From Macrostomum lignano (taxonomy: Eukaryota): DNA of 64,000 nt. Below, one piece after another: positions 13,801 to 56,109 of the stretch. The stretch spans positions 62,001 through 126,000 of the forward strand of contig NIVC01002259.1 of NCBI GenBank assembly GCA_002269645.1, in the 5' to 3' direction. How positions within the stretch are numbered: position 1 is the first letter of the stretch; each line of letters begins with the position of its first letter. Position numbers and translations under genes: made by a program. Below the pieces are notes generated by a model. That model was not told the origin of the DNA. It worked only from the letters and a program-made list of their open reading frames with translations, and made no database searches.

Positions 13801-13954
13801 CTCTTCAACGGCCAGCAGCATCGATGGGCTGCCCGTCTGGCCGGCTCTGTGGCAGCGGCAGCAGCAGATGCAAATTGCCGCTCTGCATCCCACGGCGACA
13901 AGATCAAAGCCCAGTCGACAAGTTGAACATATTAGCAGACAATCGAGCCAGTGA
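10892..13954 (+). CDS. Hypothetical protein, 1020 aa; predicted helical acidic N-terminal third, Ala/Ser/Pro-rich remainder
   Basis: 3-kb uninterrupted non-repetitive GC-rich ORF in AT-rich surroundings; no family recognised; true start could lie in an upstream exon. Confidence 0.7.
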   Translation: MLNSLSASKSSACRLFRELDSVGATAASACWSASQESLASLEEFSCLEVALDCLDDIAHENYQFVVEEMFFEAVIVEVNAELRRQPAGLIAEQLIETTVRAQAAACCLAAVSQKTRGPGNNRNSNNNHWSSRVDHNNDTTFCDLDLDYEGCQMAKAEWLSRPIAEALDRLYEVWTSAAVEEVCLETLVELVCERLVQVLYKSSHSKSQFECRIVKAVGRFNQTLDRLAATNQGERKQLQQQQRRLDAGRVADSFFDCVVDTVADPDSRRASNAMTGILLAAVPDEPGDFGGGNRGSNGVYDNWRLLGIARAAFVRSIRGQLSRLAKKSQEKHAAQSLKQQRRSALAAHVLDVGNCSLSDELESLPSDTETASISAAPPNPPVATRKTASGSSRSSGWQVQQQRCFPYRLERISEAPQHSKLSAAVELEVRTLAETAAPTSSTQQQTEEAAGCISAGFGSRLVRISASYSEATEGDSVEIRLAPAGRVSCCCSAASSGRRAKILALTAPSAAFASQLSAGRAEASATLATVATVGPSLLDCSTMAADSGAALKLPVTLLALSAAEASAAAVASGVEFATAAAPTVAPVLIASMVHRPRPLMRLARCRFVLRRLDAAPQSAVVVRVPQLPLATPSPLTNRCVVDVPAIWSVHAGVRPSRSHCCPLSHLPEPPPRLPGASGSHLSAAAKLDLAPAPAIRLTASTQPTVGTRLVGVSAGRAARSAPTPWRANGTGAASIGDVRQRGSSLQLPATERALATAADQPAPGGGALWPERPVRHWLQARQSTGWLRPTLSPVTLATSTPAAAVSASSQAELFDSSDSVGAFFAAPFEAPEVCTLGGLANSLPILAIDCQSVECRLEADRVAGSGPTGGPTVLEPPTIGTSATSVNKFEDPDEDWEDDGAHLETVITIQSIFTVGIVDEEQELEQEQQEDETEVGSRPVVMAIETPRRRPLPGGNRIPIGRSRSASSSGSSTASSIDGLPVWPALWQRQQQMQIAALHPTATRSKPSRQVEHISRQSSQ

Positions 13955-18811: not shown

Positions 18812-20805
18812 CTAATCCAGCTCGGACTCGTCCGTATCTTCAACCACGGCCTCCCAGCCGCCGTGCCGCACCACCCACATAGCGTAATGCTCTTCAAAGT
18901 AGCGCAGACAGGCGGCTTTGGCCGAATCGGTCAGATCCGGCCGACGCTTGCACAGCAGCCTGGCGATGCGGTACAGCATGGCGATGCAGCGCCAGGCCAT
19001 CCGGCCGTCGCACAAGATGCGAGTCAGTCGCTCGCTAAATAATTCATAATCAGCCAGACAGTCCAACAGTTGGTCGACATCCGACGCAGTTGGTGATGCC
19101 TCCTCGAGCTGCGGCCTCGCTTTCTTGGCCGCCTCAGCCTCCTCCTCCGTCGCTGTTGGCCCGCCCAACGATGAAGAGGAGGCCTTGGCCCGCGATCGCC
19201 GGTTCTTGGCTCGTAGCGCCAGGCCCAGACTGAAGCTGGTGGCGTCGGCGTCGGCGGAATCGCCGACCAGCTCCCTGGCGATCCGGTCCAGCATCTGCGC
19301 CACCCGGTCAAGGCGCTGCTCTTCGTCTTCATCGCCGGCTGGTGACTGCAGCTGGTGCTGGTGGCAATGCTGCTGCAACCTGTGCTGATGGTGCCAGCAG
19401 GCCCGACGAAAGTCTCGAACTACAATTGCCCGACGCTGTAACTGCTGACGAGTGTGGAACGATGAAGGCGTCGTCGCTGCTGTCGAAGAGCGACGGCCGG
19501 ATCTCGAGGCGGATACCGCAGCCTCCGTGTCTAACAGGGAGCAGCTGTCAGACTGGCGGATGAAAGCATGGGAGAGAAATTGCAGTCAGACGGAGGCTCT
19601 GCCAAACTGACAGATGCGAGGTAGGGAATGGGAGATCTGCTGACGGACTGGGATCTTAAACTTCTCTGATCCTCAAACTTGGATCTTAAAACTTCTTTAA
19701 TCCTCAAACTGGGATCTTAAAACTTCTTTGATCCTCAAACTGGGAACTTAAAACTTCTTTAATCCTCAAACTGGGATCTTAAAACTTCTCTGATCCTCAA
19801 ACTCGGATCTTAAGCTTTTCTGATCCTCAAACTGGGATCTTAAACTTCTCTGATCCTCAAACTGGGATCTTAAAACTTCTTTAATCCTCAAACTGGGATC
19901 TTAAAACTTCTCTGATCCTCAAACTCGGATCTTAAGCTTTTCTGATCCTCAAACTGGAATCTTAAACTTCTCTGATCCTCAAACTGGGATCTTAAACTTC
20001 TCTGATCCTCAAACTGGGATCTTAAACTTCTCTGATCCTCAAACTGGGATCTTAAAACTTCTCTGATCATCAAACTGGGATCTTGACAAGCGGAGATCTG
20101 CTGACGGACTGGGTGAAGAGAGTCGGAGATCTGCTTCTGACTCAATGAAAGATACTGGCTGGAGTATAGCAGTTGCCGCAGTGGCAAAAGCCGCTATCCC
20201 AGCAACAGTAGCTAACCAGAACTTACCCGGCGGCCTCTGCCTCGACCTGGCAGGCTGGAGTGCCTCAGCCTGGCAGCCTCAACGTTGAACGCAATTTCAA
20301 CGAGGCCTGAGCCTGCGCCAGTCCGACGCCGCCTGTGCCCGCTAGCCGAGGCGGCGGAGGCGACAGCGGCGGCTACAGCAGCGGCCGAGACGGCACCGCC
20401 GCCACCATTGTTAACATGGCCGTCGCCTTCGCTAAACGTGAAAGAGCGCAGCCGGCCGCCATTGCCGTCCATGTCGACGTCGCCGCTGGCCAGAGTCGTG
20501 TCGCCGATGCAAGCGGCGCAGGCGCTGCAGCCGGGATCGGAGGCCAGCAATGACGCTGGCGGAGCCTGGGAGGGTGACGAGTCGCTGCGCTGCTCGGCAA
20601 TGACAGCCAGCGGGCTGTCGCTTTCATTGCAATTACTATTAATTTTAATGCTGTTGTTATTGTCACTGCCGACCGATTTGATGTCGCCCTCGCTGCCGCG
20701 CCGACGCAAGAAAATCTCTAACAATAATCGGGCATCGTCTGCAATGGCCCCGGCGGTGGCTGTGGAGTCTGGCTGGAAGGAATGCGACCGGCGCACAGAG
20801 GGCAT
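18812..20805 (-). CDS. Bcl-2 family protein, Bcl-G/BCL2L14-like, no C-terminal TM; about 439 aa
   Basis: Exons 20805-20227 (donor GTAAGT, phase 0) and 19552-18812 (acceptor CCGCCAG), in frame. BH3-like RVAQMLDRIAREL, BH1-like MAWRCIAMLY, BH2 YAMWVVRHGGWEAVV, acidic end EDTDESELD*. Confidence 0.8.
19648..20083. repeat. 30-31-bp minisatellite (CTGGGATCTTAAACTTCTCTGATCCTCAAA)n in the Bcl-2-like intron
   Basis: Tandem periodicity; flanked by 22-bp direct repeat GGAGATCTGCTGACGGACTGGG. Confidence 0.93.
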
Positions 20806-38135: not shown

Positions 38136-40049
38136 GTGGGTATAAAGCTAAAGATCAGGGAGCTAAAGATTAGAGAGTCCAGAGAACCTACAGGTTCTCA
38201 GTGGCTTCTACCCTATCTACGTGCATGTAAATAGATCTACAAAGTGCTTGTAACTAGTACATGTACATGCATTCCTGATTACAAATGTATTTCAGTGATG
38301 ATAAAGGATCACTGGCTGCATAAAGCGCACAATCAGGCTTAATTCACTTTCCAGAGAATCCCGATCGTACATCTGCAAAACCAATAATATAGCTGCTTGA
38401 CTTTAAATCAGTGCAACAAAATGGGAAGTGCAGGAAAATTTAATAGGCTACAGCACGCGGCTACAATGAAGCTCATTCAGTGCATGCAAATAATATGTCA
38501 TAAGTTGTATGCAGTTAGTGCATGCTGTACTGTACTTTTATGTTGGCGCCGTACAATATCGATAAAAAGCAGCACAATTTTCGTAATTAATCAGCTGTGT
38601 TTTAATGGTGGGCTATTTCCAGATGTTATACCGTGTCCATAATTTTTTCTATAACTTCTATATTTATTCAACTAATATTCGATAAAAGCTGATTATGTTA
38701 AATTATTTTATTCATGTTAATTGGTGCTATAGAAAGAGCATTGTATAATTAAAAAAATATGAATAGAATCGTGCTATCCGTAGAATGACTATCCAATTCC
38801 ATTAAGCTATTTCAACCCTTCCCTTAGGAATAGGTGAAGACAATATTTTGTCGCAGGAGTTCAAACCCGGAGATTTAAGATTTGTTTGATTTCGAGTCTA
38901 ATTTGAACTTTTGCGACCTAATATAGTTCATCATAAACGAACTTATGAAACTAAAGCAAGCGTTAAAATAACAGAAATTAAAGTCTTAGTAATATTCATA
39001 TTTAATTTTAATTATTGTAAATTTATACTGTACATTTAAGGCATTTCTCTCCCTAGATTTCCGTACTTGTAAATTAAATTTTGAAAGCAAACTACTGTAG
39101 ATTTATCATGTTCATATACTATTTTATTATATACTATCACTGAGGCTCCTTAGTTTCTCTTCCAATAATTATTTCCTACAAAATCGACAGTTTAACAACG
39201 TCTTTTGTTAAAAGTGAAGCATTGAATTTTTTAATTTTAGGCGTACTTTTATTTAACATGTTAAGATTAATTAATTCATTTAAATAAAGGCCGATAAAAA
39301 TTTGATGCAACAAAAGCATTTTTAATATAAAAATCACTTAGTACAGGAAACAAAGGAAGTCGATAATTTTCGTGCCAGCCGTGAGCATAAACTGCAGTAT
39401 CCACTGTTGGGCCAGACTCCCAATACATGCATGCAATTTCAGATATTAATGTATAAAATTAATAACTAATTACAGTTGCCATGCAGATGCAGCTTTGTTT
39501 TAAAGTTTTTTTTCCATTTTAGTTTTAAAAACACAGCCCAGATAGCAGTATTTATAGAGAACTAGTTGAGGCAAAGCGAACAAAAATAAAAAAATTAATT
39601 TCTATAAATCCATTTTATATGTATAAAAGCCCAAGAAAATCACGGAGCAGTTAGTTAAGTAATTAATAGGGGCTTGAGAAGACGGTGCGTGATCGCGACG
39701 ATTCGGCGTGAAGACTTTCTTTGCTGGTTAATAAGAGTAATTTAGTAAAAACTTCCATTCATAGCGGGAAGATAAAAGCGGCAAACGATTAGGCGAGCAA
39801 GTCAAATTCAATCGCATAGAAAACGGTTGCCAGACAGCAAACTAAAAGGGGGGCTTATCTAGCAAAAAGCAATACAAAAACCGGCCCGATTAGGCCAGGA
39901 AAAACTGAAGGCTAAGACACTGAGCGCGCACTTCCTACTCTTAGTAGTAGAGGCGTTGCGTTAGCGCGCGGGCAGAGGAAATTATTGGCAGGTAGGGGGA
40001 GGGGGCGAGGAAGTCAAATCCGGAGGAGGGGCGCGGGGGCACAGGTGAG

Positions 40050-43000
40050 TTACTCATCGCGCGGCTCATCGCCTTCCGCTCCCGCCGCGTCATCTGCAGC
40101 GGCCGGAGCGGCGGCTTCATTCTCTTCCTCACCTGGCGCCGCCGCCGCGGCCGCTGACTCTGCGGCCTCAGGTGCCTCAGGCTCCGCTTCAGCTTCGGCT
40201 CGGGCTTATCCTCAGACTCAGGCTCAGCTTCAGGTTCCGCTTCAGGCTTCGATTCGGCCTCCGGCTCGGCTTCAGGCTGAGGTTCATCAGCTTCAGTCTC
40301 CGGCTTAGCCTCATCAGCTTCAGCCTCGGATTCTGGCTCAGCCTTAGCCTCCGGTTCAGTCTCGTCCTCGACCGCCGCCGGTTCCGCGGGTTCCTCGCTT
40401 TCACCCTCCACGGGTTCCTCGCTTTCACCCTCCGCGGATTTGGCCTCGCCCTGTTCCTGGCCACTCTTGCGCATCTCGGCCACCTCTTTGCGAGCTTGCA
40501 TGCCTACAAGAATCAAGCAGCGTATTTTATAATAAAAATCACACTAGCTTTACATTTTGCTTGAAGCCTGTGGAAACGGATAGAGAGTAACGGATACTCA
40601 CCGCGGAAACCAGCCTGAATTTTGGAAGCCGCCTGATTCTGAGCCGGATCGTTGGGATCCACGGCATTGGCGGCGTCCGAGTCGGCTTCGCCCTTGGCCT
40701 CGTCGGTCTTCTCCTCCTCCTCAGCCGCGGCCGGCTTCTGCTGTTACAATTGAGAAAAGAAATGAGTTGGTGTTTAGGGAGAGTTCGGGTTCGAGCGTCA
40801 AGTGCCGGGGTTTCTGCGGCTAAGGCTGTTTTGCAGTTTTAGTATAGTAGACTAGCCATTTGCTCCCCCTTAAATAAATGCAATCTATAAAATCTAGAAA
40901 TTCAGACGCACAATGCCTCACGACTCTCCAGCCTCAAAATTACTTCCAGATCCATTTAGAAACTGCTTGGGTGTCATCTCACCGTCTCAGGGCTCGAAGA
41001 GGATCTCAGATTAGAGAAGAAGGCGATCAATTTTTTCACCTGTCCGTCTTTTTGACAGCTGGCCATGGCCTAATAAATATATTCTCTTATTTAAACCAAA
41101 CTAATTCTCGCTAGCAAAAAAGCAGAAAAGGTAAAGGATTTGTTTCGTCTTCTTCTTGTTCCGTGAAGAAATCAGCGCTGATAACTAAGCAAAATGCCGC
41201 TCTATTGGTTATGAAGTAGATGAGATTTGCATTCACTAAAACCTCGCTCTTTATTGGCCGTCGCAAAAGGAACGCCAGAAATGAGGAAAAGGTGCGAAAC
41301 GAATAGGGCAAACACGGAGCGCGGTGCGCAGTTCTGTGTTTTACAATTTGCAGCAAGAGGAGAGCTTTGAGTAACAGAGGGAGAGAATGCAGGGCTAGCA
41401 TTGGCGCCATATGGCGTATACAAGTGAGATTTTTGTGACCTCTACTAATGCATTCGCCCATTAAATGCTCTAGAAAGCTTGTCTGCAAATAACAAAGCGA
41501 CTTGGAATTTATTTCTTGTAATTTTTTAATAATACTACTCTCGTAGTTCGAAAACCTTTTAGTCCTCTCCCTAATGTCTTTTAAATATGCAAAAAACTAT
41601 TAAATTTCGCGAAGAACACCTTCCGATAATCAGGTAAAGCGCGAAATCACTAAGCGGTTATTGTACTTGGCTAACAAAAATGCAGTGAAATATTGAGCAG
41701 AGAAAGCCATAAAATCCAGTGCCAAGCTTGCCGTTAATAGTTGCAGAAATCTGACTCTTTGTAAAGGGGCAGGAAAAAACTGACGTTGGTCAAGTTCGAA
41801 TTCATGAAGCCAGCTTGCGAAATGCAGCAGGTTCTGGCTCCATTTTGTTATAATGAGCTGCGTAATGTTGTAGGCTGAGAAAATCCGATTTCAGATACAA
41901 AAATGCCTCTGTTGGCTTTCAACTAAAGCATATTGTGCGGCGGCTTCTATTGCAAAATTGCGACACAAAGCGAGGCTTAATAAAAAGTCAAGCCACTCCC
42001 GATAATTATGTCAGTAATCCGTTGCGACCTCGAAGTCTCGTGAAGAACCATCAGCCGCTGATGACTCGACGGGCGCAGAAAAAGTCTCATCGACCCGTGA
42101 AGACTCAACTGCAGCTTCATCTGCAGCCTCCTCAACCGGTGAAGACTCAACGGCGGCTTCATTAGCAGCCTCATCAACCGTTGAAGACTCAACTGCAGCT
42201 TCATCAGCAGCCTCCTCAACAAGTGAAGACTCAACAGTGGCCTCATCAGCGGCCTCATCAACCGGTGAAGATTTAACTACAGCTTCATCAGCAGCCTCCT
42301 CAACCGGTGAAGACTCAACAATAGCTTTATCAGCAGCCTCCTCAACCGGTGAAGACTCAACGACGGCTTCATCAGCAGCCTCATCAATCGGTGAAGACTC
42401 AACAATAGCTTCATCAGCATCATACTCAACCGGTGAAGACTCAACTGCAGCTTTATCAGCAGCCTCCTCAACCAGTGAAGCCTCAACGATGGCTTCATCA
42501 GCAGCCTCATCAACCGGTGAAGACTCAATGACGGCTTCATCAGCAGCCTCATCAATCGGTGAAGACTCAACAATAGCTTCATCAGCATCATACTCAACCG
42601 GTGAAGATTCAACAGTAGCTTCATCAGCATCATCCTTAACCGGTGAAGATTCAACTGCAGCTTCATCAGCAGCCTCCTCAACCGGAGAAGACTCAACAAT
42701 AGCTTTATCAGCAGCCTCCTCAACCGGTGAAGACTCAACGACGGCTTCATCAGCAGCCTCATCAACCAGTGAAGATTCAACAGTAGCTTCATCAGCATCA
42801 TCCTTAACCGGTGAAGATTCAACTGCAGCTTCATCAGCAGCCTTATCAATCGGTGAAGACTCAACGTTGGCTTTATCAGCAGCCTCCTCAGCAGGTGAAG
42901 ACTCGGCAACCACGGCGGTCTGCAGATCTACCGTCTCCTCAACGGGTGCAGACTCGGCAACCACGGCGGTCTGCAGATCTACCGTCTCCTCAATGGGTGC

Positions 43001-46000
43001 AGACTCGGCAACCACGGCGGTCTGCAGATCTACCGTCTCCTCAATAGGTGCAGACTCGGCAACCACGGCGGTCTGCACATCCACAACCTCATACTCATAC
43101 TCGGTGTCAAAAGTAAGCAAAGCCTCGAATGCAGCCACTTTGTCATTAATTTTAGAGTCAAAGGGGGCTGACTCGGCAATGCTTGTTGTCTGCTTGATGC
43201 TGGGTACCGCACCAGAGGGAAATGGTTGCTAGGGGAAGAGAAATAAAACGGGGGAAACTTAGAACGCATATAAACATACCTGCTTATAATTAACAGCAAA
43301 CTTGAGAATATGGAAAATTTGATGTCAGTGGGAAAATCTTCGATTTATTAGCCTAACAAGATGCAATAATTTCATACCTCAAGTTTTCTGCAAGAAATCT
43401 GTAAAGAAATTTGCCATCATGAAGCTTGACCATAATGAAACTGTGACACACAATATAGTGTACTTGATTCAGAAATAAACGTTTGTTTTAATTTAATCAG
43501 CTTCATTTTGGTAAAGAATCATGATAAGCATCACAGGTTTATCAAGGTCAAGTTTCAAAATCGATCCTTCACAAAGTTCTGCAACAAAGTTCTGAAAGTA
43601 CATGTAGTTGCGTAACCTTCTGTATTGGCACCAACTTTTGCAACAAGATGCTTTTAAAACTCGCCAAAGCGTTGCTTGCAACTGAAGAAGTTGGACGAGA
43701 GGCTCGCTTGTAGAAAATTTTTCAAGTGGGGCAGACCAGGGTCGCCTCATGGTTAAAACAAACGGATTAACCAAAGAGGCTTCTACCTGGTTAAGTACAC
43801 GCCTTGGAATCATTGAAAAGTATAAATTATTTACGACAAAAATAGCAAGAAAATATGCAATTTATGGTCTAATAAAGAAAAGGAAAATTCAAGCAAGAAC
43901 TGCACTGGTTTCTAACCTCTTCCTCGGCCTCTTTCTGCTCCGCCGCTTCGTCCTGCTGCTCCTGGCCTGTTTCGTCCTTCAGCTTCTTGCGAGTCTGATA
44001 GCCTTTGAAGCCGGCCTGGATCTTGATGGCAGCCTGGGCCAGCTCGGGATCGTTCAGGTCGATCTCCTCCTCTGGGTTCTCCTGCTAGATGGGGATTGGG
44101 AACAAATAGAATAGTTAGTGAGCTTGCTCATCCCTTGGTTGCACTGAGCTCAGCTACGAGTCTACGACTCAGAATCTACTTAAGAGCTTAATAACACGTA
44201 TTTTCAAAATATTACATGTTTTTTTCTAAATTACTATTTAGAATGGTATGAGTTTTTGACTAGCTAATGTATATTCTTGATGCTTTAGAAAGGTAAGGAC
44301 TATCGACTAGCTAATGTACATTCTTGATGCTTTAGAAAGGTAAGGACTATCGACATGCTAATGTATATTCTTGATGCTTTAGAAAGGTAAGGACTATCGA
44401 CTAGCTAATGTACATTATTGATGCTTTAGAAAGGTAAGGACTATCTACTAGCTAATGTACATTCTTGATGCTTTAGAAAGGTAAGGACTATCGACTAGCT
44501 AATTTACATTCTTGATGCTTTAGAAAGGTAAGGACTATCGACTAGCTAATGTATATTCTTGATGCTTTAGAAAGGTAAGGACTATCTACTAGCTAATGTA
44601 CATTCTTGATGCATTAGAAGGGAATGAGCTATAGCCTGGCTAATGCACATATAATGCAAAGGTAAGCTTGCTTCATTATACCTGAGGCTCCTCGGCCGCC
44701 TGCTCCTGAGCCTCGTCCTGCTGCTGCGGTTTCTCAGCCTCTTCGCCAGCATCCGGGGCCGCCTCCTTGAATGAAAGAGAGAATTAGAATTAATTTTCAT
44801 ATAAAGCTGCGCTCTACTCGATACGAAATCAAACTGAGACAAAGACAACAGAGAGAAAACTAGGCTACGTGTGAAAAGTGGAAAATGTTAACAAAATGAC
44901 AGTAAAACGAATATTTGGTGAGGTTTAAATTAATATTTTATTAGTAGGGGGGTTACCTTGCTGGCACTCTTGCGACTCAGCGGACCCTTTGACGAGCGCT
45001 CTCGATCGCCAAAGCAACACAGAAGAAATGAGCTCATGCTTCTGAGCCAATAAGTTATCTGAGTCTACACACCACTGGCTTAAGCTATTTGACACTAATT
45101 TGTTTTCTCTGCACAGCTGCACCTTTGTTAATTTGGCGGCAAAAAGTGCACATGCGCCGCCGAGCAATAGCAGGCTTGAGGGTGAGAGTGAGTGAAATAT
45201 CGGAAGCAGGCCAGGAGCGAGAGGCCGAACGCAGAGAGCTTATATTTATGCATTTTATCCGCTGCAGGGTCTCGACTCTCGCCAGCTGAAAACTGTCTGA
45301 CTTTTGGAATAGGAGAGCCGCACGGCCTCACCTGTGCGCGCAGGCCCGCTTCAGTTTTCAGAACTTCTCTCTCTCTCTCTCTCACACTCAACCCTGAATG
45401 CTGTATCCATCGGACCTACAGTTTACTCACACGCCGGAAGCAGATATTACCAATTGATAAACTTGGGACTTCCGTGTGCAAGTAGTCTGACTTAAACATC
45501 CCTCACTGTAAGATTAGTGATGAGCCTCTTACAGCTGCCAGGTGCACAGTCAGGTGGATGACTTAAAACGGTTTGAACGCGCAGGACCTACTGCAGCATC
45601 GCTCGATAAAATTCTAGTCAAGTTCTCCAAAAATAAACCCCGTTGCCTGCTTTCAAATAAACAGCCACTTGTACGGGACTGCCAAATGGAGGCAACTTAG
45701 CAGTTCTTGTGCTGTCAAATTAATAATTCATGGATACTTCTGCTCCAGTTGGACGGTAATCACCACGGAGATTAATTATAGCCTTTTAAGATTTGAGAAG
45801 ATTTGATAGAAGTCTATGCACAGGTGCTGTACAAGAGTGCATAAGCACAGGCAATGTGTACTTTTTGGCAAGGAATTTGCTCTATAGAGTTTCTATGCTC
45901 TATAGTGAGTTAGTAGCGGTCAATTCTGAGCTCTTGTTGAGTCTTGTAACAAGTTGGCTTAAATTCACGGTTGCTGAAGGTTTGCCTAGAAAAGCACAAT

Positions 46001-49000
46001 GAACGAAAAATGCTTTCCAGTGTTAATTAGCGAGCTGTTAATATTGGGATTATGTGAATCTCAACAACACAATGGGACAAAAAACACGGAATAAACTATT
46101 ATCGGTCTCCATGCAGCCTAGAGCTCTTGTTAATAGGCACGAATTGAATTCGGAAACAAAGGAAGGTGATTGAACGATGCAGCATTGAAAGCAAAGCAGG
46201 CATCCCAAACGCTTTGATAACTACAATGTAACAATACGCATAGTAGATGAACTCTACTCAAGTGCTCCCTGCTTGGTGACTGGCTACCAGGGACCCTGGA
46301 ACTCTGAAAACTTTACTTTGTTTCCTTTTTAATCCGAAAACAAATACTTCTGCGCACTTTTCTCTGTGAAAATCTCTAAAATTTCTTCGAGTTCAGTCTT
46401 CCAGTCCAGGGCAGTTCCAGTTGTCCCTGATAATTACTAAGTCAGTCAGTAGTAAAAATGATAAAAGCTAGTACTAATAAAATTGGGACTTAGGAAACTA
46501 AAACAAACTCGGCACTGGGTAAGTGCCAGTGACTGGGAACGCTCGAGCGGCATAGGATACCTTTCCTGTTTCTGCGGAGTTAGCGTCCCCGGAGCGGGAC
46601 TTATGGCTGCTCCATCCGCGTTGAATTTTGACAGCAGCCGCCTGCACCTCTGGGTCGTTCAGATCTATATCTACCTCCTCTTCACCGTCCTTGTCTCTAA
46701 TCTGTCCCGCGGGCTCTGGAGCAGACTCTTCAACTACATCAGGCTCGCTGACTTCATCAGCTTTCTTAGCCCGAGACTTGTGGCTGCTCCAGCCGCGTTG
46801 TATCTTGACGGCAGCTGCCTGAACCTCTGGGTCTTCCAGATCGATGTCTACCTCTTCTTCATCATTTTTCTTCTCTTCTTCCGCAGTTTCTGGAGCGCCC
46901 TCTTCAGCTGGCTTTGCTGCATCATCTTCATCAGCTTTCTTAGCCCGAGACTTGTGACTGCTCCAGCCGCGTTGTATTTTGACAGCAGCTGCCTGAACCT
47001 CCGGGTCTTCAAGATCAATATCTACTTCTTCTTCAACATTGTCCTTCTTCTCTTCCACAGATTCTTGAGCAGTCTCCTTAACAGCATCATCTTCATCTGT
47101 CTTATTGGCTCGAGACTTGTGACTGCTCCAACCACGTTGAATCTTGACAGCGGCTGCCTGCACTTCTGGGTCTTCAAGGTCAATATCTACCTGCTCCTCT
47201 TCGGCTTCGGCCTTTTTATCTTCAACCGGCTCGGGAGCAGTCTGTTCAACTGGCTCAGCTCCATCAGCGTCCTCAGACTTCTTAGAGCGGGACTTGTGGC
47301 TGCTCCAGCCTCGTTGAATCTTAACAGCAGCTGCCTGCACCTCTGGATCCTCCAGATCTATGTCTACTTCCTCTTCTTCATCGTGTTTATTCTCTTCCGC
47401 AGATTCTGAAGCAGTTTCTTTAACTGGTTCGACAGCTTCATCTTGATCAGTCTTTTTAGCCCGAGACTTGTGGCTGCTCCAGCCTTGTTGAATCTTGACA
47501 GCAGCTGCCTGCACCTCTGGATCTTCCAAATCGATGTCAACCTCTTCCTCTTCCTCAGCGTTTTTCTCAACCGGTTTAGCTTCATCAGCTTCATCAGACT
47601 TCTTAGGGCGGGATTTATGACTGCTCCAGCCTTTCTGAATCTTAACAGCAGCCGCTTGCACCTCTGGGTCTTCCAGATCTATGTCTACCTCTTCCGCAAC
47701 CCCCGGGTCCCCTGCCTCGGTCTTGGCAGCAGCGGTGCTTTCATCGGCTGCAGACTGAGCAGCCTCGACGGCTGCTGCTGCTGCCCTCATTGCCTGAAAG
47801 CGTCGCGCAAAAAATGTTCTTGCAGAGTGCGAGTACGCAATGTAGCTTGCAAAAACTAATGCTGTATATTAATTAGCCTTGACACGAACTATTTTTAGCG
47901 AAATAGACATAATTAGAGTTTAATTATTAGAAAGCAATTGTTAAAAAGCAAAGATGTTAAAAAAACAGTAGCGATGCATGATCATGGGGGTTTACAATAG
48001 ACAGTGCCTTATTGTGATCCGCTCATGTATTGACAGCTTATGTGGTAATTTAAATTGAAAATCCAGCTCACCTCTCGCTTGGCCTTCATATCCTTTCGGG
48101 TGCGGTAGCCCTTGTAGCCGGCCTGTATTTTCACGGCCGCCTCTTCCAATTCGTCCTTGGATGGGCCCTCGATGATTTTCTGTCGGGAGAGAGTTGAGAG
48201 TGCACATTTGATTGGTTATTTATTGTTGAAATGACTGCTAGATGTGCAAGAGACCGCTGTCGGGGAGCAGCAATAGCTGCTTGAACTCAATATTATGGAT
48301 AGAGGTGGTACAGACATCTTTAATGACAGTTCACAGCCATTTTTACCCAAATCAGTATTACAGTAAACAAAAATGAGCTGTAGAAATAGTAAAAGTCCCA
48401 ACAAACTGCCATGAATCAAATCGGGATCCAAAATTTGGGAATAATGATTAAATTAACTTTAAAGAAATATTTTAAGGGTTCAATCGTGCTTTCATTAAGC
48501 CAATAGGCTTATGGAAAGCTCTGCCTTCATTTACATTAGAGAACGTCCATATATGGAAATGAATACATTTTACTCTGAGCCATTCATTGCAAAGTTAGAA
48601 ACTTATGCTGCAAATTATCTAGAGCAAACAGCGCACAAATCCAAGTGAAACAGCGAAGATAACCTCATTTACAATCGCTGGCATTGTTATTTATATATTT
48701 CTTGATGTCTGACTGCATAAATACTTTGGCGTGGTAAGAAAGAGTAAGACGTGCATGGGCAAATAAAAATAAATAATATTTAAAGAAGTTAGAAGCGACC
48801 AAAGTCAACTGCAAAACTAATTGGGACCAGAAACGCAGACAGCAGATTGGGTACTTGGCGGTGTTCACGCGGTCCACACCCACACGCAAACTGCAACAAA
48901 CCAAACCGGGCTGTAGGCTCCCCTTTGCGTTGCCAAGCATCTCAGAATGAATATACATGTAAATACCGGCGTATGTGCGCAAATTTGTACCGACTATTTT

Positions 49001-52000
49001 GGGCACAAATGTTAATAATAATAGCATCACAATTCGTATTCGAATTCGGCTACAACTCTGCCAACTCTGTGTTTACTTTAGCTTGGTAGCAAACGCTTCG
49101 CTTGATACCAAACCGCCCGAACGCATTATTCTCTTCGCTCCCCGATGCCAATGAGTAGTAAGTAAAGCATTTAAATGCGCAGATAGTAGCAGTTTCACAA
49201 ATCAGTTTAGATAAGCCGTGAGATTCAATTAACTATGCAAGTTCAGACTTGCAATTTCCACCGTTTCGCCTTGTTTATACAACCGATTACAACCAAGCAC
49301 AGATTACGCAGAACGGGAGCAAGTAACTCATGAGTTTTGGCTTTGCGACCATGATAGCTTTTGGTCTAGGGGGAAGCTAAAGGGTAGGCTGGATTGATAA
49401 TGCGGGTAAATTGAAGCTTGAGATTGAGACTTGTTGATTATTCGCACCTTGGCTAAGCGCTGGATTGGCCAACGTCCTCCACCCCATCCTCACCCGCATT
49501 CGCTCCTCTCTGTCGTGAAACTCCTGCCTCGCTTCGGCTTCTCGCGTCTGGCGGTCGTAGAACCAGTCGGAGAATTTGACAGGCGACGGGGGCCCATTCG
49601 ACGGTGGCGAGAACTGGCGCGGCAGTGACTGCACCGTCGCTCGGTGCGGCGATTTCGGTGCGGCTCTGCTGGCCGGCTGCGTCTCAGCCTCGTCGCCGCC
49701 GTCTTTACCGACCACGCCACCATTCTCGGGCTTCGCGGCCAAGTATCGCTTCTTCAAAGAAGCCCATCTGTCGGCGTAGTTAATATTGTCTTGCTTGCGG
49801 AGGAAATCATACCGACTCATTGTGGCCGCCTTTTTAATATTGCCCGGCTTTGGTGGCGCCTGGTGCATGCTCTGGGACCTAGTCACAGTAATGGTCTCGG
49901 TGACCTCCGATGGCACCTCTGTTGCTGTCTTATCCGCATCCGGTTGACTCGGTGACTCGATAGTTATCTGAGGTGTCACGCGCACTTGTTTGTTGTCTAC
50001 AGTCTTACTGGCCGCAGGTGTGGGAGTCCGATCATTTTCACCGGTTTTCGAGCTAGCCTTCGGCTCAGGAGCATTGCTCTTTCCGCTTTTGCCGCCCGGC
50101 TTTGCAGCATCCTTGTTCTTCTTCTTGCGTCGACCGAAACAGCCCAGCATAGTTTGGCTTTAGACGAATTTCGTTGCCTCGTGCCTTTGTTAAGAGAATG
50201 AAGCTCTATGGAGAGCGCAAAGATCACCTGTCGATTGATGAGTAAATAGCGTCAGAAAATGCTGCCAACCTAGCCGCAGAAGAGGCTGCGCGCCGAGCTT
50301 AGCAACAAGAAATCAAGATGGGGTTGCTTGCCACTCGCCGCTAGCGCACTAGAGCCTGGTGTACAATGCCGGCATCCAGCCAGGCCAGCCAATGACGAAC
50401 AAGGAACCGAGAACTGACGTTATCGTAGAGGAGATATCGCACACACAATGAACGATTAGCTTGTTGCCAAACTGACTGGACAGGAGCAGTGACAAAGCGC
50501 TTGCGCCAAAGCTAAAATTCTGCGCAAATTTGCAGACAGCCACCCGGCTGAGGAGGGCTTACAGTCCAGGCAGAAGGAAAGTGTTTCACTACCTCTTCTA
50601 GTGCAGCTCTTTCCCTGCAACCAACGCGAGCTGAGCAAAGTGGGGCGGGTGCAGCGCTTTACTGTCTTCTGCTTTGGAACTCCTCTTCTTTTGCTTTGGC
50701 TTCTGTCTTCTGGTTGTGTCTTCTGCTTTTTTTATAAAAAAAAGTCGAACCAGCAGACCAATATGCAGCGTTCCGCAGAGCAGTTGAGTTGAATTGGCAA
50801 GAGCGGTTTGCTCCTGGGGCTCCGAATGAAGCGTTCTTCTTCTCTGTCTCTCTCTATTCTCTTTTTAGTTCTTTTTAGTGCAAATTTGTACAGCTCTGTT
50901 CTCTCACACACTCCGCTCTCTCCTCTCTCTCTCCTCGCATGCTTGTAGAACTCGATCTATGCCCAGCGACCAGTGGTGTAGGTGCTGCGCTGCGGTCTTC
51001 TTGGGAGGCGAGGGAGGATGGGTTGGCGCCGGCCAAGTGCGCCGGTACTGCGCAATAAAGAACTCAAGGTCTCGGAGGGGGCCCAGCCCGGTATATACCA
51101 GCCTCACCTCGCAGTCACAGCTCGTACTTGCCAGCCCGTTTCTAAGTGTCCATTTATACAAGATACGCATTAGTGTATATAGCCAACGCTTTAATTAGAA
51201 TTCACTTTGAGCCCAGGGCTGCAAGACAGCATGAATTGGAAGTTGGAACAGATACGTATTATATACAGGCGTATAGCTATTTTTCACAATATTAACGAGC
51301 TGTAATAATGAGTAGGTGGGGCTAAGTACAAGCTTAACAGCTGCACTGGCTAAACTGTCGATCCATTGTGTATTCTATTGTATATTAGTGATCAACTGTC
51401 CGAGTAATACGAATGAAATCGACGAGGAAATTCTATTGTACGTTTAATGAACAATTCCTTTTTATGTGTAGTTCTCTGACTAAATTACATGTACGAATTC
51501 AGATATTCGAATAACTCAGACTAGACACTCCGAGATTCAAGAGATTTATTAGTTTAAGGTGGAAGGAATAATTCGTTTGGTAGGTAATTAATTATGTGTT
51601 TTTGAGTCTGCATGGAGTGACATGGAGTGAAAATGACAATGCTTATAAAAAAACTCGCCAAACTGTGTTTTTGATAATAGCTATTTTAGTAGCGTGAGTA
51701 ACAGCAGTTGTTGTTGTCCCAGAATAATAGACTACATAGCACAGAGCCGCAGGCTATGGGAGGAGCGGCTCTTAACGGTTGTCGCATTAATGTACATTGC
51801 TCCAAATGAATGTACACTGGCCGCAATTAAGCCGAGACCCCTAGACGCCCAGCCCCGTCTCTCTGACCCAGACAGGCTAGGCTGGTGGAGCTCTCGGGTA
51901 AATATTGATTTTTCTCTCTCCCCCACTGTACGCGAAACCGAAGCAAACAAAGCGAGACTTGGGCTCGCCCAGGGGGCAGTGCGACGATAAATAAGCCCTG

Positions 52001-55000
52001 GCCTAGGGCCTTTTCATATTACCAATTCCAGAACCAGAATCGGTTCGGAATTCCAAGAAAAACAGCAGTATAACTATTAAACTCTGTTAATATTTGACTG
52101 CCTTAACAGCCTCACTTTGCACGATTTTTCACTTTCTTTTTGGCGATTGTCATTCAATAATAAAAACTTTATAGCACGTATCTCCCTCTAGTTATGGAGA
52201 CAAAAAGTTATACCTCACAAATTGGTTCTGGTTCTGGAACCAGAACAAGCAATATGAAAAGGCCCCTAGTGGACTACTCTTCCACTTCAGACAAAACCTG
52301 TTGTTGTCTAAAAAACACCCCCAGGCCCTGTCAGCTACTACAAGCCTACATAGAAACTGCGAATTGGCCGGTGCAATGATGACCTTAATGCGAGAAAGCC
52401 TAGTGCAAGCTAGCCACTACTTTACTGGCTAGATTTATCCGTATTTAACTCTCAAACAATAGGAAAGGCAAGGGTGCGTGAGTCAAAATATATCCAACTA
52501 CGCTACTTGCTACGACTACGAGGGTAGTAGTATTTAAAACATTTTTATCAAGCGCAGCTTGTTAAAATCTGCTTCAAACACTCCCTGATTTTAAAAGTTG
52601 CTTAGCTCATACACTGTACAGGACAAAACACTGTAATCATTTAAAACATAGCAGTAGTATATGTGGCATTTTATCTCAACAGACAAAACACCATAAATAA
52701 CTAGGCTTGAAAATGGCCGGCAAAAAAGTCACTTGCTGCGGCAGTAAGCGGGGTAGAATTATAAAAATTTCAGCGTGCACTTTTATTAAAAGCTTCTCCA
52801 TCTGTTCGGCCGTGAAGCCGATGAAAGAAACGGAAACTAAGCAGAAAGAAAGGAGGCGACCGGACGCATGAGCGAGCGGGTCGAGTTGGACAAACATGCC
52901 CTATCCTAGCCGAAGGAAAGGGAAATCTATCCCCTCCCTCAGCCCCATCGCTGCATATTTATCAATGCTAGAGATCGAGAGTGGCTCAAGTGGGGGGCAG
53001 TCGGCAGCAAATCTAGCAGCAAAAGGCATGGTCGAATGTCCCGAAAAAGCAAGAGGAGAGAAAACAGGAGCTGTGCAGACCGCGAAGAATACTTGGGAGA
53101 ATTTAGCGACAGCGAACGATCTATAGCAGGTCAGACAGACCCGGACAGCGCTGTTTGAGGCTGGCAAGAAGTGCATTTCACGCTTTGCTTGTACCAATGA
53201 CTATATGCGCACGCATGCATAGTGTAATAGTAGTACTGCACCCGATACCACAGTTCCCCATGCCCCTGCAGTCGGCCAAATAACTTCAGTCGATAATACG
53301 ATACGAAACAACTTTACTTTCCAAGATATCTGTCGCTAGTGCAAAAGTCTGCAGCATCATATTACAGGATTATGTTAATTATGACTTCGCAGATATAGGC
53401 TATGATAAACTAATAAGAAGACAGCATTGAATGAGTACACACAGGAAGTGCATCCATTATTTGCTTTGCAATTGCCCAAAAATGTACACAGAAGCATGCT
53501 CTTACAGTAAAGCACAAAGACATGCTTACAGAATCTTCTTCCTCCGCATCAGCGGCCGCTGAAGCTGGCTGGTTTTTCTTCTCCAGCAGGTCCTTCCGTG
53601 TTTTGTAGCCTTTGAACCCTGCCTGGATTTTCGCCGCCGCGGCCTCCACCTCGGGATCGTTCAGGTCGATGTCCTGCAGTGGCAAGAGTTGATGAATTTG
53701 GGATGTCAGGGTCTGGCAGGTCTTCAGCTCATCTAGAAATCTTAAGATCATTTTAGAGACCCTGATACTTTTGAAGAGACCCAGACACCCTTGAAGAGAC
53801 CCATACTCTTGTAGAGATCCTGACACCCTTGAAGAGACCCAGACACCCTTGAAGAGACCCATACTCTTGTAGAGATCCTGACACCCTTGAAGAGACCCAG
53901 ACACCCTCGAAGAGTCTCAGACACCCTTGAAGAGACCCAGACACTCTTGTAGAGACCCTGACACCCTTGAAGAGACCGACCCAGACACCCTCGAAGAGTC
54001 TCAGACACCTTTGAAGAGACCCAGACACTCTTGTAGAGACTCAGACACCCTCGAAGAGACCCAGACACCCTCGAAGAGTCTCAGACACCTTTGAAGAGAC
54101 CCAGACACTTTTGTAGAGACTCAGACACCCTCGAAGAGACCCAGACACCCTCGAAGAGTCTCAGACACCTTTGAAGAGACCCAGACACCCTTGAAGAGAA
54201 CCAGACACCCTTTGAAGAGAATCAGACATCCTTAAAGAGACCCAAACACCCTTGAAGAAACTCAGACACCCTTGAAGAGACCCTGAAACCCTTGAAAAGA
54301 CCCAACCCAAACACCCTTACAGAGACCTTGGCACCCGTATACTGTAGAGACCCTGACACCCGTAAAGAGACCCTGAGACCCTTATACTGCAGAGACTCTG
54401 ACATCCTTATAGAGACCCAGACAACCTCAGAGAGACCCTGACACCCTTGAAGAGACCATGACACTCTTGAAGAAACCCTGACACTCTTAAAGAAACCCTG
54501 ACACCCTTGAAGAGACCCTGGCACTCTTGAAGAAACCCTGACACTCTTAAAGAGACCCTGACACCCTTGAAGAGACCCTGGCACTCTTGAAAAGACCCTG
54601 ACACCCTTGGAGAGACTCTGACACCCTTGAAGAGACCCTGGCACTCTTGAAAAGACCCTGGCACCCTTGGAGAGACCTCTAAACCCTCATGGAGAGCCTG
54701 ACACCGTTATCAAGTCTTACACTTACCACTTCCTCAGCCGATCCCTGTTCGGGAGCCGATTGTCTGTAAAATGGAAAGCCAATTCAAACTTTAAATGATG
54801 ATTTGACATCCGATTTTTCCTAGCTGTGCTCTGCACTACGACCTACGCATGTACTACTGCTGCTGCTCGGGAATCACTAGCCAATAGTGATGCATTTAGA
54901 AACTCGAACTAAAAGAGGCGGCCAGATTGATGGCGGATACGGTAAGATTGAGTTGCAGAAATTGGACAGGGCGCCGTCTCTTTCTCGCGGAGGCTGAGTT

Positions 55001-56109
55001 GTCTGGATCGATCGAAGGAATTAGCGAGGGGCGGCAGAGGGAGAACGAACGAGCAGTTCTGATTAATAATGCTATAAGCTTAACTCTGACTTAATCTGGT
55101 TTGCACTTTTTCGTCATAAAGTCTGCGCGACCTTTCTATATGAGATGCTGGCTGATTTACAAAGAATTATTCAGTTGGGAGAATTGCCCGCCCAGGCGTT
55201 ATGAACCTGTGTCTGACTCCGAGACAGACAAGCCAGCAGTTAACCAAACAGACGTGAAAATAACTAAGACACATAGTGTAAAGAGACTGAGACCCCAAGA
55301 CAGACACTGAAACAGGCAGACAAGCAAACGCCAAGACAGACAGTAGTGAAAGGTGGACACTAAGACAGCAGACACTAAGACATCAGGATAGGGGGACACT
55401 AGGACAGACAGACACCAGGACACAGACACCAGGGCAAGTTAGACACTAGGACAGGCAGAAACCAGGACAGGCAGACACCAGGACAGGCAGACACCAGGAC
55501 AGACAGATATTAGGACAGGCAGACACCAGGACAGGCAGACACCAGGACAGGCAGACACCAGGACAGGCAGATATCAGGGCAGACAGACACCAGGACAGAC
55601 AGACACCAGGACAGACAGACACCAGGACAGGCAGACACCAGGACAGGCAGACACTAGGACAGGCAGACACCAGGACAGGCAGACACCAGGACAGACAGAC
55701 TGTGCACCCACTTGATGGCTTCGCGCTCCTGGTGGCCGCGCACAGCAGACTGGATCTCGCTGGCCGCCTTGTCCTCGCGCAATTTGGCGGCCTCCTTTTG
55801 CGCCGCGTGCCGCCTAAAATTGGTCTGGATGACCTTGGAGGCGTCCTGCTGCTGCGGGTCGGATGGGTCGATGGTGGGCTGCTGGAAGGAGGTGTTGTTG
55901 TAGAACCTGTCCTCGACTTTGGCAGCCAGTTGGGCCGGATCGTCGTCGCCAGTTTCCTCGCGTCGGCGGATCAACTCCTCGAAGTACATGGCGCCGAAGG
56001 TGTAGATGTCGGCTGGCTGGGAGCGAAGCACCTCGCGGGCGAGGCCCTCCAGGAGTGATTGAAATCCGCGAGGAACACGGAGCTTCGTGCTGCTGAACGG
56101 TACTGACAT
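40050..56109 (-). CDS. SPA17: Sperm surface protein 17-like giant isoform: RIIa D/D domain plus 13 IQ motifs plus Glu/Ala/Pro tail (about 920 aa)
   Basis: Exons 56109-55712, 54763-54727, 53673-53530, 48179-48072, 47793-46561, 44765-44682, 44084-43917, 40740-40602, 40503-40050, all GT-AG with compatible phases. N-terminus MSVPFSSTKLRVPRGFQSLLEGLAREVLRSQP..AKVEDRFYNN matches the Sp17 signature; apparent 1-nt deletion near 40199 in the last exon. Confidence 0.88.
42011..43228 (-). CDS. Candidate alternative terminal exon of the SPA17-like locus; 405-aa acidic repeat (ESSPVEEAADEAAV)
   Basis: Acceptor TTTCTCTTCCCCTAG at 43229, phase 0, open for 1218 nt to TGA; 42-bp and 51-bp coding repeats with synonymous-type variation. 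Confidence 0.6.
   Translation of the reverse strand, partial: QPFPSGAVPSIKQTTSIAESAPFDSKINDKVAAFEALLTFDTEYEYEVVDVQTAVVAESAPIEETVDLQTAVVAESAPIEETVDLQTAVVAESAPVEETVDLQTAVVAESSPAEEAADKANVESSPIDKAADEAAVESSPVKDDADEATVESSLVDEAADEAVVESSPVEEAADKAIVESSPVEEAADEAAVESSPVKDDADEATVESSPVEYDADEAIVESSPIDEAADEAVIESSPVDEAADEAIVEASLVEEAADKAAVESSPVEYDADEAIVESSPIDEAADEAVVESSPVEEAADKAIVESSPVEEAADEAVVKSSPVDEAADEATVESSLVEEAADEAAVESSTVDEAANEAAVESSPVEEAADEAAVESSRVDETFSAPVESSAADGSSRDFEVATDY
44252..44612. repeat. 47-bp intronic minisatellite, about 7.5 copies
   Basis: ACTAGCTAATGTACATTCTTGATGCTTTAGAAAGGTAAGGACTATCG, period 47. Confidence 0.94.
44957..45037 (-). CDS. Candidate alternative first coding exon MSSFLLCCFGDRERSSKGPLSRKSASK (27 aa; not in the ORF track)
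   Basis: AAGC-ATG context, phase-0 donor AAG|GTAACC matching the phase-0 exon at 44765; di-Cys motif. Confidence 0.6.
46561..47793 (-). CDS. 1233-nt phase 0-0 exon with seven acidic-IQ repeats
   Basis: EEEVDIDLEDPEVQAAAVKIQ(R/K/Q)GWSSHKSR x7; acceptor CTTTCAG, donor AAG|GTATCC. Confidence 0.9.
49494..50150 (-). CDS. Candidate alternative first coding exon MLGCFGRRKKKNKD.. (219 aa)
   Basis: In-frame TAA 12 nt upstream of the ATG, A at -3; phase-0 donor CGG|GTGAGG compatible with the IQ exon at 48179. Confidence 0.65.
52004..52268 (+). mobile_element. About 265-bp MITE-like dispersed repeat, copy 2
   Basis: TIRs TAGGGCCTTTTCATATT / AATATGAAAAGGCCCCTA; colinear with 26297-26560. Confidence 0.78.
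53755..54700. repeat. About 20-bp degenerate minisatellite (AGACACCCTTGAAGAGACCC) filling SPA17-like intron 2
   Basis: Tandem periodicity. Confidence 0.92.
55330..55700. repeat. 16-bp minisatellite (GGACAGGCAGACACCA)n in SPA17-like intron 1
   Basis: Tandem periodicity starting next to the donor. Confidence 0.92.
55712..56109 (-). CDS. SPA17: SPA17-like exon 1: RIIa dimerisation/docking domain plus two IQ motifs
   Basis: LLEGLAREVLRSQPADIYTFGAMYFEEL, KVEDRFYNN, IQTNFRRH, IQSAVRGH; donor AA|GTGGGT. Confidence 0.9.

Follow-up and report, generated by a model that had tools for sequence, protein, structure and literature searches.

On the minus strand of a 64,000-nucleotide (nt) stretch of the Macrostomum lignano genome (NCBI assembly GCA_002269645.1, contig NIVC01002259.1, approximately 62001-126000), hereafter called the window and used for all coordinates below, positions 56109-39941 hold an exon for an Sp17-type RIIa domain, 13 IQ-like motifs and two start exons of the Met-Cys kind. 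We propose, at what we regard as even chances, that this Sp17 locus is a complex locus in which three alternative 5' coding exons, here called heads A, B and C, feed shared downstream phase-0 IQ exons. Head A (the RIIa domain and two IQ motifs) would, like Sp17 itself, anchor the protein to AKAP-type helices in the axoneme. Heads B (MLGCFGRRKKK followed by a Macrostomum-specific domain) and C (MSSFLLCCFG) would carry S-acylation, as GAP-43 and neurogranin do, on a Cys beside residues that are basic or hydrophobic, so that an IQ array of the same kind would be held at membranes; the acidic/IQ modules, which are of the calpacitin type, would hold apo-calmodulin locally. Both the exon joins in this copy and the separate promoters are what we infer from the features described below.

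The exon structure was rebuilt from the sequence and from the mapping onto the window of P0059 (UniProt A0A1I8GWL3, 'RIIa domain-containing protein', M. lignano, 898 amino acids (aa)), which a HMMER scan returned as 100% identical to the MLGCFG exon. All exons follow one another on one strand in the order A1-A1b-E2-[B]-E3-E4-[C]-E5-E6-(TA)-E7-E8 (Table 1). A preliminary description of this DNA had placed these elements on the minus strand, among them two further Met-initiated exons within introns (50150-49494 and 45037-44957), and all were located in the sequence; the 37-nt exon A1b (54763-54727) had been overlooked. Its statement that every junction from 53673 to 40740 is phase 0 was confirmed by the rebuild: all junctions from the E2 acceptor (53673) through the E7 acceptor (40740) are phase 0, and the cassette exons are all phase 0 at both ends. 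The A1-A1b junction is phase 2 and the E7-E8 junction is phase 1 (CGC G/GTGAGT at 40602/40601, the slash marking the exon end), splitting the last IQ motif. Head B lies 1.3 kb before E3 and head C 191 nt before E5, that is, each in the intron directly upstream of its candidate partner exon, which is the usual layout of alternative first exons.

Between positions 39800 and 56300, the tandem arrays in putative exons have periods of 24 (E8), 42 and 51 (TA) and 174 (E4), all multiples of 3, and those in introns have periods of 47, 20 and 16, none of which is a multiple of 3. The DNA of the window is rich in simple repeats, and a Rfam scan of it gave no match. Poly(A) hexamers number 26 in approximately 18 kb, with one downstream of each candidate end, and are hence uninformative. 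A bacterial or phage reading was set aside in view of the canonical GT-AG introns and the metazoan homologues.

Exon A1 opens with an ATG at 56109 and comprises 133 codons. Its RIIa domain matches Pfam PF02197 (E 2.4e-13, 50 bits for a cut-off of 22.4), and the exon aligns over its full length with the human Sp17 chain 8j07_K, residues 1-134 of the chain on residues 1-132 of the query, at E 2e-30 and with the Sp17 chain 9fqr_Ic at E 8e-30. The named database homologues of A1 are all Sp17, and the likeness extends beyond the RIIa domain to the central DRFYNN block and the IQ motif after it, collinear with vertebrate Sp17. The N-terminus, described earlier as Sp17-like, is on this sequence evidence that of an Sp17 orthologue. 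Binding to AKAPs and a location on the axoneme or fibrous sheath would be expected of the head-A protein, given its RIIa domain and the presence of Sp17 chains in 8j07 and 9fqr, which we take to be axonemal maps.

The short exon A1b contributes the 'EEV' of the EEVDIDLNDPEV unit, which A1b and E2 rebuild across the intron and which is uninterrupted in Owenia, in Elysia and in a protein from a JGI contig (P0058). Since A1b and E2 together restore this Sp17-type unit, A1, A1b and E2 belong together. The three exons are also collinear with a teleost Sp17/neurogranin protein of Poecilia (P0009, E 3e-42), and E2 aligns with the acidic/IQ region of PCP4 (2n77_B, E 0.009) over both the acidic stretch and the IQ motif. 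E2 ends in phase 0 at a good GTAAGC donor and contains no stop; therefore, head-A transcripts should run on past head B.

Sp17 proteins with several such units occur in other animals. The Owenia fusiformis protein P0066 (348 aa) has the RIIa domain, two head IQ motifs and then EEVDIDLxDPEV...KIQAG(F/W)(K/R)G units, with five IQ motifs in total, and P0058 (254 aa) has the RIIa domain, two head IQ motifs and units of the same type. In Elysia marginata (BMAT01007356.1, 20456-35955), nine IQ units stand in tandem on one strand, and the locus appears by its units to be an Sp17 orthologue whose RIIa exon would lie beyond the retrieved 10 kb. These homologues indicate that multi-IQ Sp17, with units of the neurogranin/PCP4 acidic-IQ type in annelid and mollusc alike, is real and conserved in Spiralia. 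A further Owenia contig (L009) holds a genomic terminal exon with three IQ motifs and is uninformative on heads. The public annotation divides the Elysia array into at least two gene models, one of them named 'abnormal spindle-like microcephaly-associated protein homolog'. In contig L002 of ENA ERZ4576001, an in-frame TAA stands at about position 511 where Owenia P0066 has Glu (GHRDR-stop-KVK versus GHRDREKVK), and the VDIDLNDPEV IQ frame continues after it; this TAA is probably an error in a contig of 1.4x coverage, shortening the called protein P0001.

Its conservation marks head B as a true translation start under selection, with an N-terminus that is GAP-43-like in its Cys and polybasic stretch. 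An orthologue in another Macrostomum-like genome (protein P0053, contig L001) has 66-70% identity to head B and its donor at the same codon, and comparison with the other Macrostomum species gives a non-synonymous divergence (dN) of 0.22 and a synonymous divergence (dS) of approximately 2.0, with dN/dS approximately 0.11. The family comprises six proteins among 1.84e9 representatives, and those with names are all from Macrostomum lignano. Their alignment has 48 invariant columns, with M, G, C, F, G, R, K and K of the N-terminus invariant, and the five homologues besides P0059 begin at the head-B Met, as M-(L/PF)-GCFG-(R/K)-RKK. The window copy carries the N-terminal block of the family, M-x(1,2)-GCFG-(R/K)-RKK, its RYDFL...DRW...LK..YL, SLPRQFSP and F-S-x-W-F blocks, and REE before the IQ exon. 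In the window and in L001 alike, the head-B ATG is preceded, 12 nt upstream, by an in-frame TAA, every genomic head-B locus has an in-frame stop upstream of the Met, and the contig carrying the paralogue P0061 (L007) is intronless and transcript-like and starts with MPFGCFG after an in-frame stop. P0059 enters head B 7 nt before the ATG, whereas the nearest usable acceptor in L001 is 2 nt upstream, so that the phase differs. We read head B as a start exon because conservation begins at the Met, because the TAA precedes it in both genomes and because the acceptor phase of L001 differs.

A six-frame search of the window for the pattern M-x(0-6)-[GC]CF[GS] gave heads B and C and no other site. 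The preliminary description had likened the N-terminal Cys and basic residues to the acylation signal of GAP-43, and the motif is indeed present and invariant in the six head-B homologues; homology to GAP-43/neuromodulin was not found, Pfam returning no family for head B at E <= 0.1 and head C with its exons matching IQ only. By these matches heads B and C appear GAP-43-like in layout and not members of that family. S-acylation (palmitoylation) on Cys is predicted for both heads. N-myristoylation of head B was dropped as a candidate, the Gly being at position 3 or 4 and not 2. When the head-B alignment was run as a profile against the PDB, no relative in fold was found; the best match (E 0.04) was on the IQ part.

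The paralogues also indicate which exons follow head B. In all members, REE(R/K)xx runs into the IQ exon, and the junction of the window (REERMR/KIIEGP..IQ, against REERMQ/LIIEGP..IQ in P0063) is conserved in P0063, P0060 and P0062; the join from 49494 to 48179, which had been set beforehand as a test, is thus matched in paralogous sequences. E7/E8 match the second IQ motif of P0060 and P0061 (DESDPRxNxAAxKIQAGFKGMQARKEVxELRK), and the phase-1 intron after FR that separates E7 from E8 recurs at the identical position in the last IQ exon of P0063. Since E3 follows head B and E7/E8 match the IQ of head-B paralogues, the head-B transcript by homology would consist of B, E3, E7 and E8, spanning E4, head C, E5, E6 and TA. 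Exons assigned by homology to different heads interleave on one strand, with E4, head C, E5 and E6 between E3 and E7. We also considered E7/E8 as 'the' C-terminal IQ of Sp17: compared with head IQ 2, it is the closer match to the IQ of mammalian Sp17, but head IQ 2 of Owenia is equally similar, and the comparison is not decisive for transcripts.

In E8, the window is one base short relative to P0059 at approximately 40199 (GAG[G]CCGAAG). The corrected frame gives an acidic tail ending in DEPRDE with its stop at 40053, and the literal frame gives a basic, Pro-rich tail with its stop at 39941. The gap reflects an indel error of PacBio sequencing or else a frameshift specific to the allele or paralogue. 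A V/A difference between the window and P0059 was also observed at approximately 40420. Two possible terminal exons had been suggested at the outset; E8 holds as one of them, with the one-base frame correction needed for an end at about 40050, and the other, TA (43228-42011), lacks a coding signature.

The 13 IQ-like motifs lie at 55830, 55755, 53628, 48128, 47640, 47493, 47319, 47142, 46977, 46803, 46626, 44021 and 40620. A stricter IQ pattern gave 12 matches, all on the minus strand in the locus and none elsewhere in the six frames of the window, for a mean of 0.52 and a maximum of 3 in shuffled sequences. With the gathering cut-off of Pfam IQ (PF00612) at 20.3 bits, E2 (23.2), E3 (26.8), E6 (27.4) and E7/E8 (25.8) exceed it on their own, the second head IQ reaches 24.3 bits within the whole exon and 17.4 alone, the first head IQ is below the cut-off and the seven units of E4 (IQxGWSSHKSR) score approximately 12 bits or nothing. 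The count of 13 IQ motifs given earlier thus holds for IQ-like sites, of which five reach the Pfam cut-off (one only in whole-exon context) and eight do not.

The seven E4 units share the core VDIDL(E/N)DPEVQAAAVKIQxGWSSHKSR. Across the 81-nt (27-codon) core of the seven repeats, 29 nucleotide columns vary, 25 of them at third codon positions, and pairwise comparison of the repeats counts 228 synonymous against 17 non-synonymous codon differences. The units are degenerate as IQ motifs yet under strong purifying selection, and because of this ratio of differences we regard the divergent 'IQ' of E4 as old and strongly constrained. The Trp after IQ-x-G is common to E4 and the Owenia Sp17 units. 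The E4 units have Ser-Ser where a canonical IQ has (R/K)-G, a selected non-canonical variant of the motif. Calmodulin binding by the IQ units of the locus, and especially by the seven divergent units of E4, is predicted from their resemblance to known IQ motifs. The acidic stretch right before the IQ, of the DIxLDDPxxxxAAxKIQ type that marks calpacitins, is present, and E6 has 58% identity over 40 aa to a teleost neurogranin open reading frame (ORF; pairwise E 2e-13). At the position of the protein kinase C (PKC) site Ser in IQASFRGH, all units of the window have Gly, Lys, Gln or Arg (IQAGF..., IQRGW...).

For head C, the argument as a start exon is statistical: the rough expectation of a chance match to the Met-[GC]CF[GS] pattern in its intron is approximately 0.004. 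The similarity search detected no homologue of head C in an index apparently without M. lignano proteins, P0059 not being returned although identical to the query. C-E5-E6-TA forms a closed ORF. TA shows no signature of purifying selection (173 synonymous against 521 non-synonymous differences), and we keep it as a putative terminal exon.

The spliced leader (SL) of M. lignano ends in ATG (PMC8629364). Such an ATG would be in frame on any phase-0 acceptor, allowing headless IQ isoforms. The published trans-acceptor motif [T/C]TNCAG fits only the acceptors of A1b, E2 (CTGCAG/) and E4 (TTTCAG/GCA ATG...) and the site before the A1 ATG, and is not matched at the sites immediately before heads B and C; the second codon of E4 is its own ATG.

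Table 1. Exons and candidate exons of the Sp17 locus (window coordinates; a slash marks an exon boundary)
Feature	Positions	Strand	Description
A1	55712-56109	-	RIIa domain, KVEDRFYNN block, two head-type IQ motifs; donor ATCAA/GTGGGT, phase 2; P0059 residues 1-133
A1b	54727-54763	-	37 nt, QSAPEQGSAEEV; acceptor TTTTACAG/A, donor GTG/GTAAGT; ends in phase 0; from P0059 mapping and sequence
E2	53530-53673	-	acidic/IQ unit DIDLNDPEVEAAAAKIQAGFKGYKTRK; phase 0 at both ends
Exon X	50908-50999	-	GA-rich, low-complexity; in P0059 only, bridging E2 to a site 7 nt before the head-B ATG
Head B	49494-50150	-	MLGCFGRRKKK and a Macrostomum-only domain of about 200 aa; donor CGG/GTGAGG, phase 0
E3	48072-48179	-	IQ exon KIIEGPSKDELEEAAVKIQAGYKGYRTRKDMKAKRE; phase 0 at both ends; next after head B in paralogues
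E4	46561-47793	-	seven 58-aa repeats; phase 0 at both ends; begins 278 nt downstream of E3
Head C	44957-45037	-	MSSFLLCCFGDRERSSKGPLSRKSASK, MSSFLLCCFG...; donor AAG/GTAACC, phase 0; 191 nt upstream of E5
E5	44682-44765	-	acidic linker EAAPDAGEEAEKPQQQDEAQEQAAEEPQ; phase 0 at both ends; part of P0059
E6	43917-44084	-	acidic/IQ unit (Q)ENPEEEIDLNDPELAQAAIKIQAGFKGYQTRKKLKDE; tandem TAG/CAG acceptor (44084 or 44081); phase 0 at both ends
TA (candidate terminal exon)	42011-43228	-	acidic, 14-aa and 17-aa repeats, ends ...ATDY before the stop; acceptor CCCCTAG/C, phase 0; absent from P0059
E7	40602-40740	-	first half of the last IQ (...NQAASKIQAGFR/G); donor phase 1, within the IQ
E8	39941-40503	-	remainder of the last IQ (GMQARKEVAEMRK) and acidic E/P/A tail

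The idea of one gene with swappable heads, as it was put in the preliminary description, is therefore borne out for the Sp17 head, the multi-IQ array, the start in head B and the homology of the B-E3 junction and of E7/E8, and is weakened by the paralogues that lack RIIa and by head C, for which no homologue was found. Likewise, the expected conservation of the head exons in relatives was found for A (Sp17 homologues) and B (the orthologue in L001 and the six-member family) and not for C. Besides the interleaving of the exons, the complex-locus reading has in its favor that P0059 strings A1 to E8 together as one gene and that fusion proteins of Sp17 and neurogranin are known from zebrafish and other teleosts. 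Several observations weigh against it, the lack of a head-C homologue being one. An exact-sequence look-up of 32 candidate products (read-through ORFs, and heads A, B or C with E3-E8 and TA) found none of the 32 on record. The donors of E2 and E4 could stay unused, with read-through stops at 53410 and 46498 and AATAAA/ATTAAA hexamers downstream. The window copy of E8 has the 1-nt frameshift, and P0059 is itself a predicted model into which head B is forced as an internal exon. At the paralogous loci L005 and L006, no RIIa exon was found within 10 kb upstream; the head-B paralogues stand alone, which indicates that a head-B unit can exist as an independent gene, and the B unit of the window could equally be a separate gene. 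Finally, SL trans-splicing affects about 30% of the genes of M. lignano, and operons hold many (PMC8629364); several genes on one strand are therefore possible without exon sharing.

These points lead to the main alternative, to which we give a substantial but smaller probability, namely that one strand carries two or three distinct genes, arranged in tandem or nested, that have no exon in common. They might be an Sp17 orthologue (A1-A1b-E2, perhaps with E4), a GAP-43-like head-B gene (B-E3-...-E7-E8) and a small neurogranin-like head-C gene (C-E5-E6-TA), resolved by SL trans-splicing of a common precursor. The stand-alone paralogues and the intronless L007 are what such genes would look like; the C-E5-E6-TA exons close an ORF, the IQ array of Elysia is likewise annotated as at least two models, M. 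lignano makes frequent use of SL trans-splicing and operons (PMC8629364), and in mammals SPA17 and NRGN are separate neighbours (PMC4098794). Yet E2 and E4 have no stop codon and finish in phase 0 at donors close to the consensus, and the tails obtained by reading through them look non-coding (VSMSLCFTVRACF..., VSYAARAFPV...). Moreover, the exons assigned to head B (E3 and E7/E8) flank E4, C, E5 and E6, so that the units must at least overlap, and the poly(A) site of a gene nested on the same strand would be liable to cut short the transcript of its host; the TA exon, which would close the head-C gene, shows no coding selection.

It is improbable, in our estimate, that a single promoter drives one long gene here, as modelled in P0059, whose path is A1-A1b-E2-X-(QT)headB-E3-part of E4-E5-E6-E7-E8, with head B internal and the Met-Cys heads never N-termini. 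P0059 does join E2-X-(QT)MLGCFG...-E3 in frame and at canonical sites; however, the conservation of head B starts exactly at the Met, where the other five homologues start, the in-frame TAA stands 12 nt before that Met in the window as in L001, the acceptor phase is not conserved (7 nt against 2 nt upstream), exon X is GA-rich and of low complexity, and P0059 uses cryptic sites inside E4. Exon X may be at most a 5' untranslated exon of head-B transcripts, or gene-predictor glue. The least probable account sees in the window copy a duplicate undergoing decay in a genome of hidden polyploidy, with little or no transcription and an architecture that is a poor guide to function. It could invoke the 1-nt deletion in E8, the V/A difference and the 0 of 32 guessed products on record though other ORFs of the contig are annotated, but the other exons are all intact with canonical splice sites, the protein sequence of E4 is kept across 228 synonymous differences and single-base indel errors are expected in a PacBio-based assembly.

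Elsewhere in the window, an ORF on the minus strand at 18812-19378, possibly together with 20212-20805, ends in ...WVVRHGGWEAVVEDTDESELD and matches Pfam Bcl-2 with 27.9 bits (E 3.7e-6) for a cut-off of 31.4; it is probably a gene of the Bcl-2 family, and it is not among the called genes of the NCBI record for that stretch. On the plus strand, 10892-13954 is a single-exon ORF of 1020 aa with a GC content of about 0.6-0.67 and long antisense ORFs overlapping it; it has an exact match at 72892-75954 of NIVC01002259.1, where the NCBI record lists a gene, and has no Pfam domain.

The complex locus that we propose has partial parallels in known systems. Mammalian Sp17 (151 aa) resembles exon A1 alone in its RIIa domain, KVEDRFYNN block and following IQ motif, but ends after one IQ, whereas here, in Owenia and in Elysia many acidic/IQ units come after the head, and in this locus Met-Cys start exons are added. 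The closest parallel in arrangement is in teleosts: zebrafish nrgnb, also called spa17, encodes 188 aa with an Sp17 head and a neurogranin IQ (PMC9415131), and the 'Sp17' models of salmon and Poecilia (P0005, P0009) contain a complete neurogranin ORF after the Sp17 head. As in the window, a DI(P/D)L(D/N)DPE...AAAKIQAGF(R/K)G unit comes after the head; unlike the window locus with its nine or ten acidic/IQ units, the teleost gene has one, and the Cys start of neurogranin (MDCH...) is read there as internal sequence. In the mouse, Nrgn and Spa17 are neighbours at one locus (PMC4098794). In the library searched, just three papers name SPA17 together with NRGN, and an evolutionary link is drawn in none of the three. 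It had been suggested that the arrangement of the window was undescribed. This does not hold for RIIa combined with a neurogranin-type IQ, already known from zebrafish nrgnb and the teleost models, and UniProt has a single-gene model of this very locus in P0059; it does hold for Cys start exons in an invertebrate Sp17 locus. The novelty lies in two Cys-bearing start exons within such a locus, in a lineage-specific head-B family whose paralogues already stand alone and in the seven non-canonical IQ units under selection.

The calpacitins (neurogranin, GAP-43/neuromodulin and PCP4/PEP-19) share with the window the acidic stretch right before the IQ motif (EEVDIDLNDPEVEAAAAKIQAGF of the window aligned with PCP4), and the acidic tail of GAP-43, rich in E, A and P, resembles the E8 tail. 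In GAP-43 and neurogranin, a tiny first exon carries the N-terminal Cys acylation motif, and Drosophila igloo is also a calpacitin. The differences are that no homology was detected outside the IQ unit, that there is no Pfam neuromodulin match and that many IQ units and an RIIa head are present here. The PKC-site Ser of IQASFRGH is replaced by Gly in teleosts (PMC9415131), as in the IQAGF units of the window.

An older parallel is RSP23 of Chlamydomonas, which joins NDK to IQ repeats. Its IQ (DDPAQLDEAATKVQAAFRGYQARKEVAVMR) resembles that of the window (NDPAQNQAASKIQAGFRGMQARKEVAEMR), and 'DDPAQ' before the IQ is common to both; RSP23 (7jrj_K) is the best PDB match of E7/E8 (E 2e-6), followed by Sp17, and it also comes ahead of mammalian Sp17 for the IQ of E2 (E 3e-5). 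RSP23 is an axonemal calmodulin-binding protein, present in radial-spoke structures together with the RIIa proteins RSP7 and RSP11. Its catalytic NDK head differs and the likeness is limited to the IQ region, and the match hints at a very old axonemal IQ type. The arrangement of RIIa with a neurogranin-type IQ appears, from its distribution among the homologues, to be ancient.

On the origin of the calpacitins, a tentative hypothesis could be issued, which we rate as possible but rather unlikely: the ancestral bilaterian Sp17 consisted of an RIIa head and phase-0 acidic/IQ exons, and calpacitins arose when internal IQ exons gained Cys start exons and promoters of their own. Neurogranin would then have remained beside SPA17 in the mouse and fused to it in zebrafish nrgnb, with GAP-43 and PCP4 probably derived via genome duplication. 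Macrostomum would present the same process midway or repeated independently, with heads B and C lying within the Sp17 locus and the head-B paralogues as units that had already escaped.

If the heads share the IQ exons, the same calmodulin-holding array would be placed either on the axoneme, through RIIa, or on membranes, through the acylated heads, which would be a simple genetic switch for the site of calmodulin buffering. Such sharing would also offer a concrete, testable point of departure, in a ciliary protein, for the origin of the neuronal calpacitins (neurogranin, GAP-43 and PCP4), whose invertebrate ancestry has been obscure so far. The seven IQxGWSSHKSR units of E4 are in addition a natural experiment on the drift of IQ motifs under selection. 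M. lignano is open to transgenesis, and so these readings can be put to the test in the animal itself.

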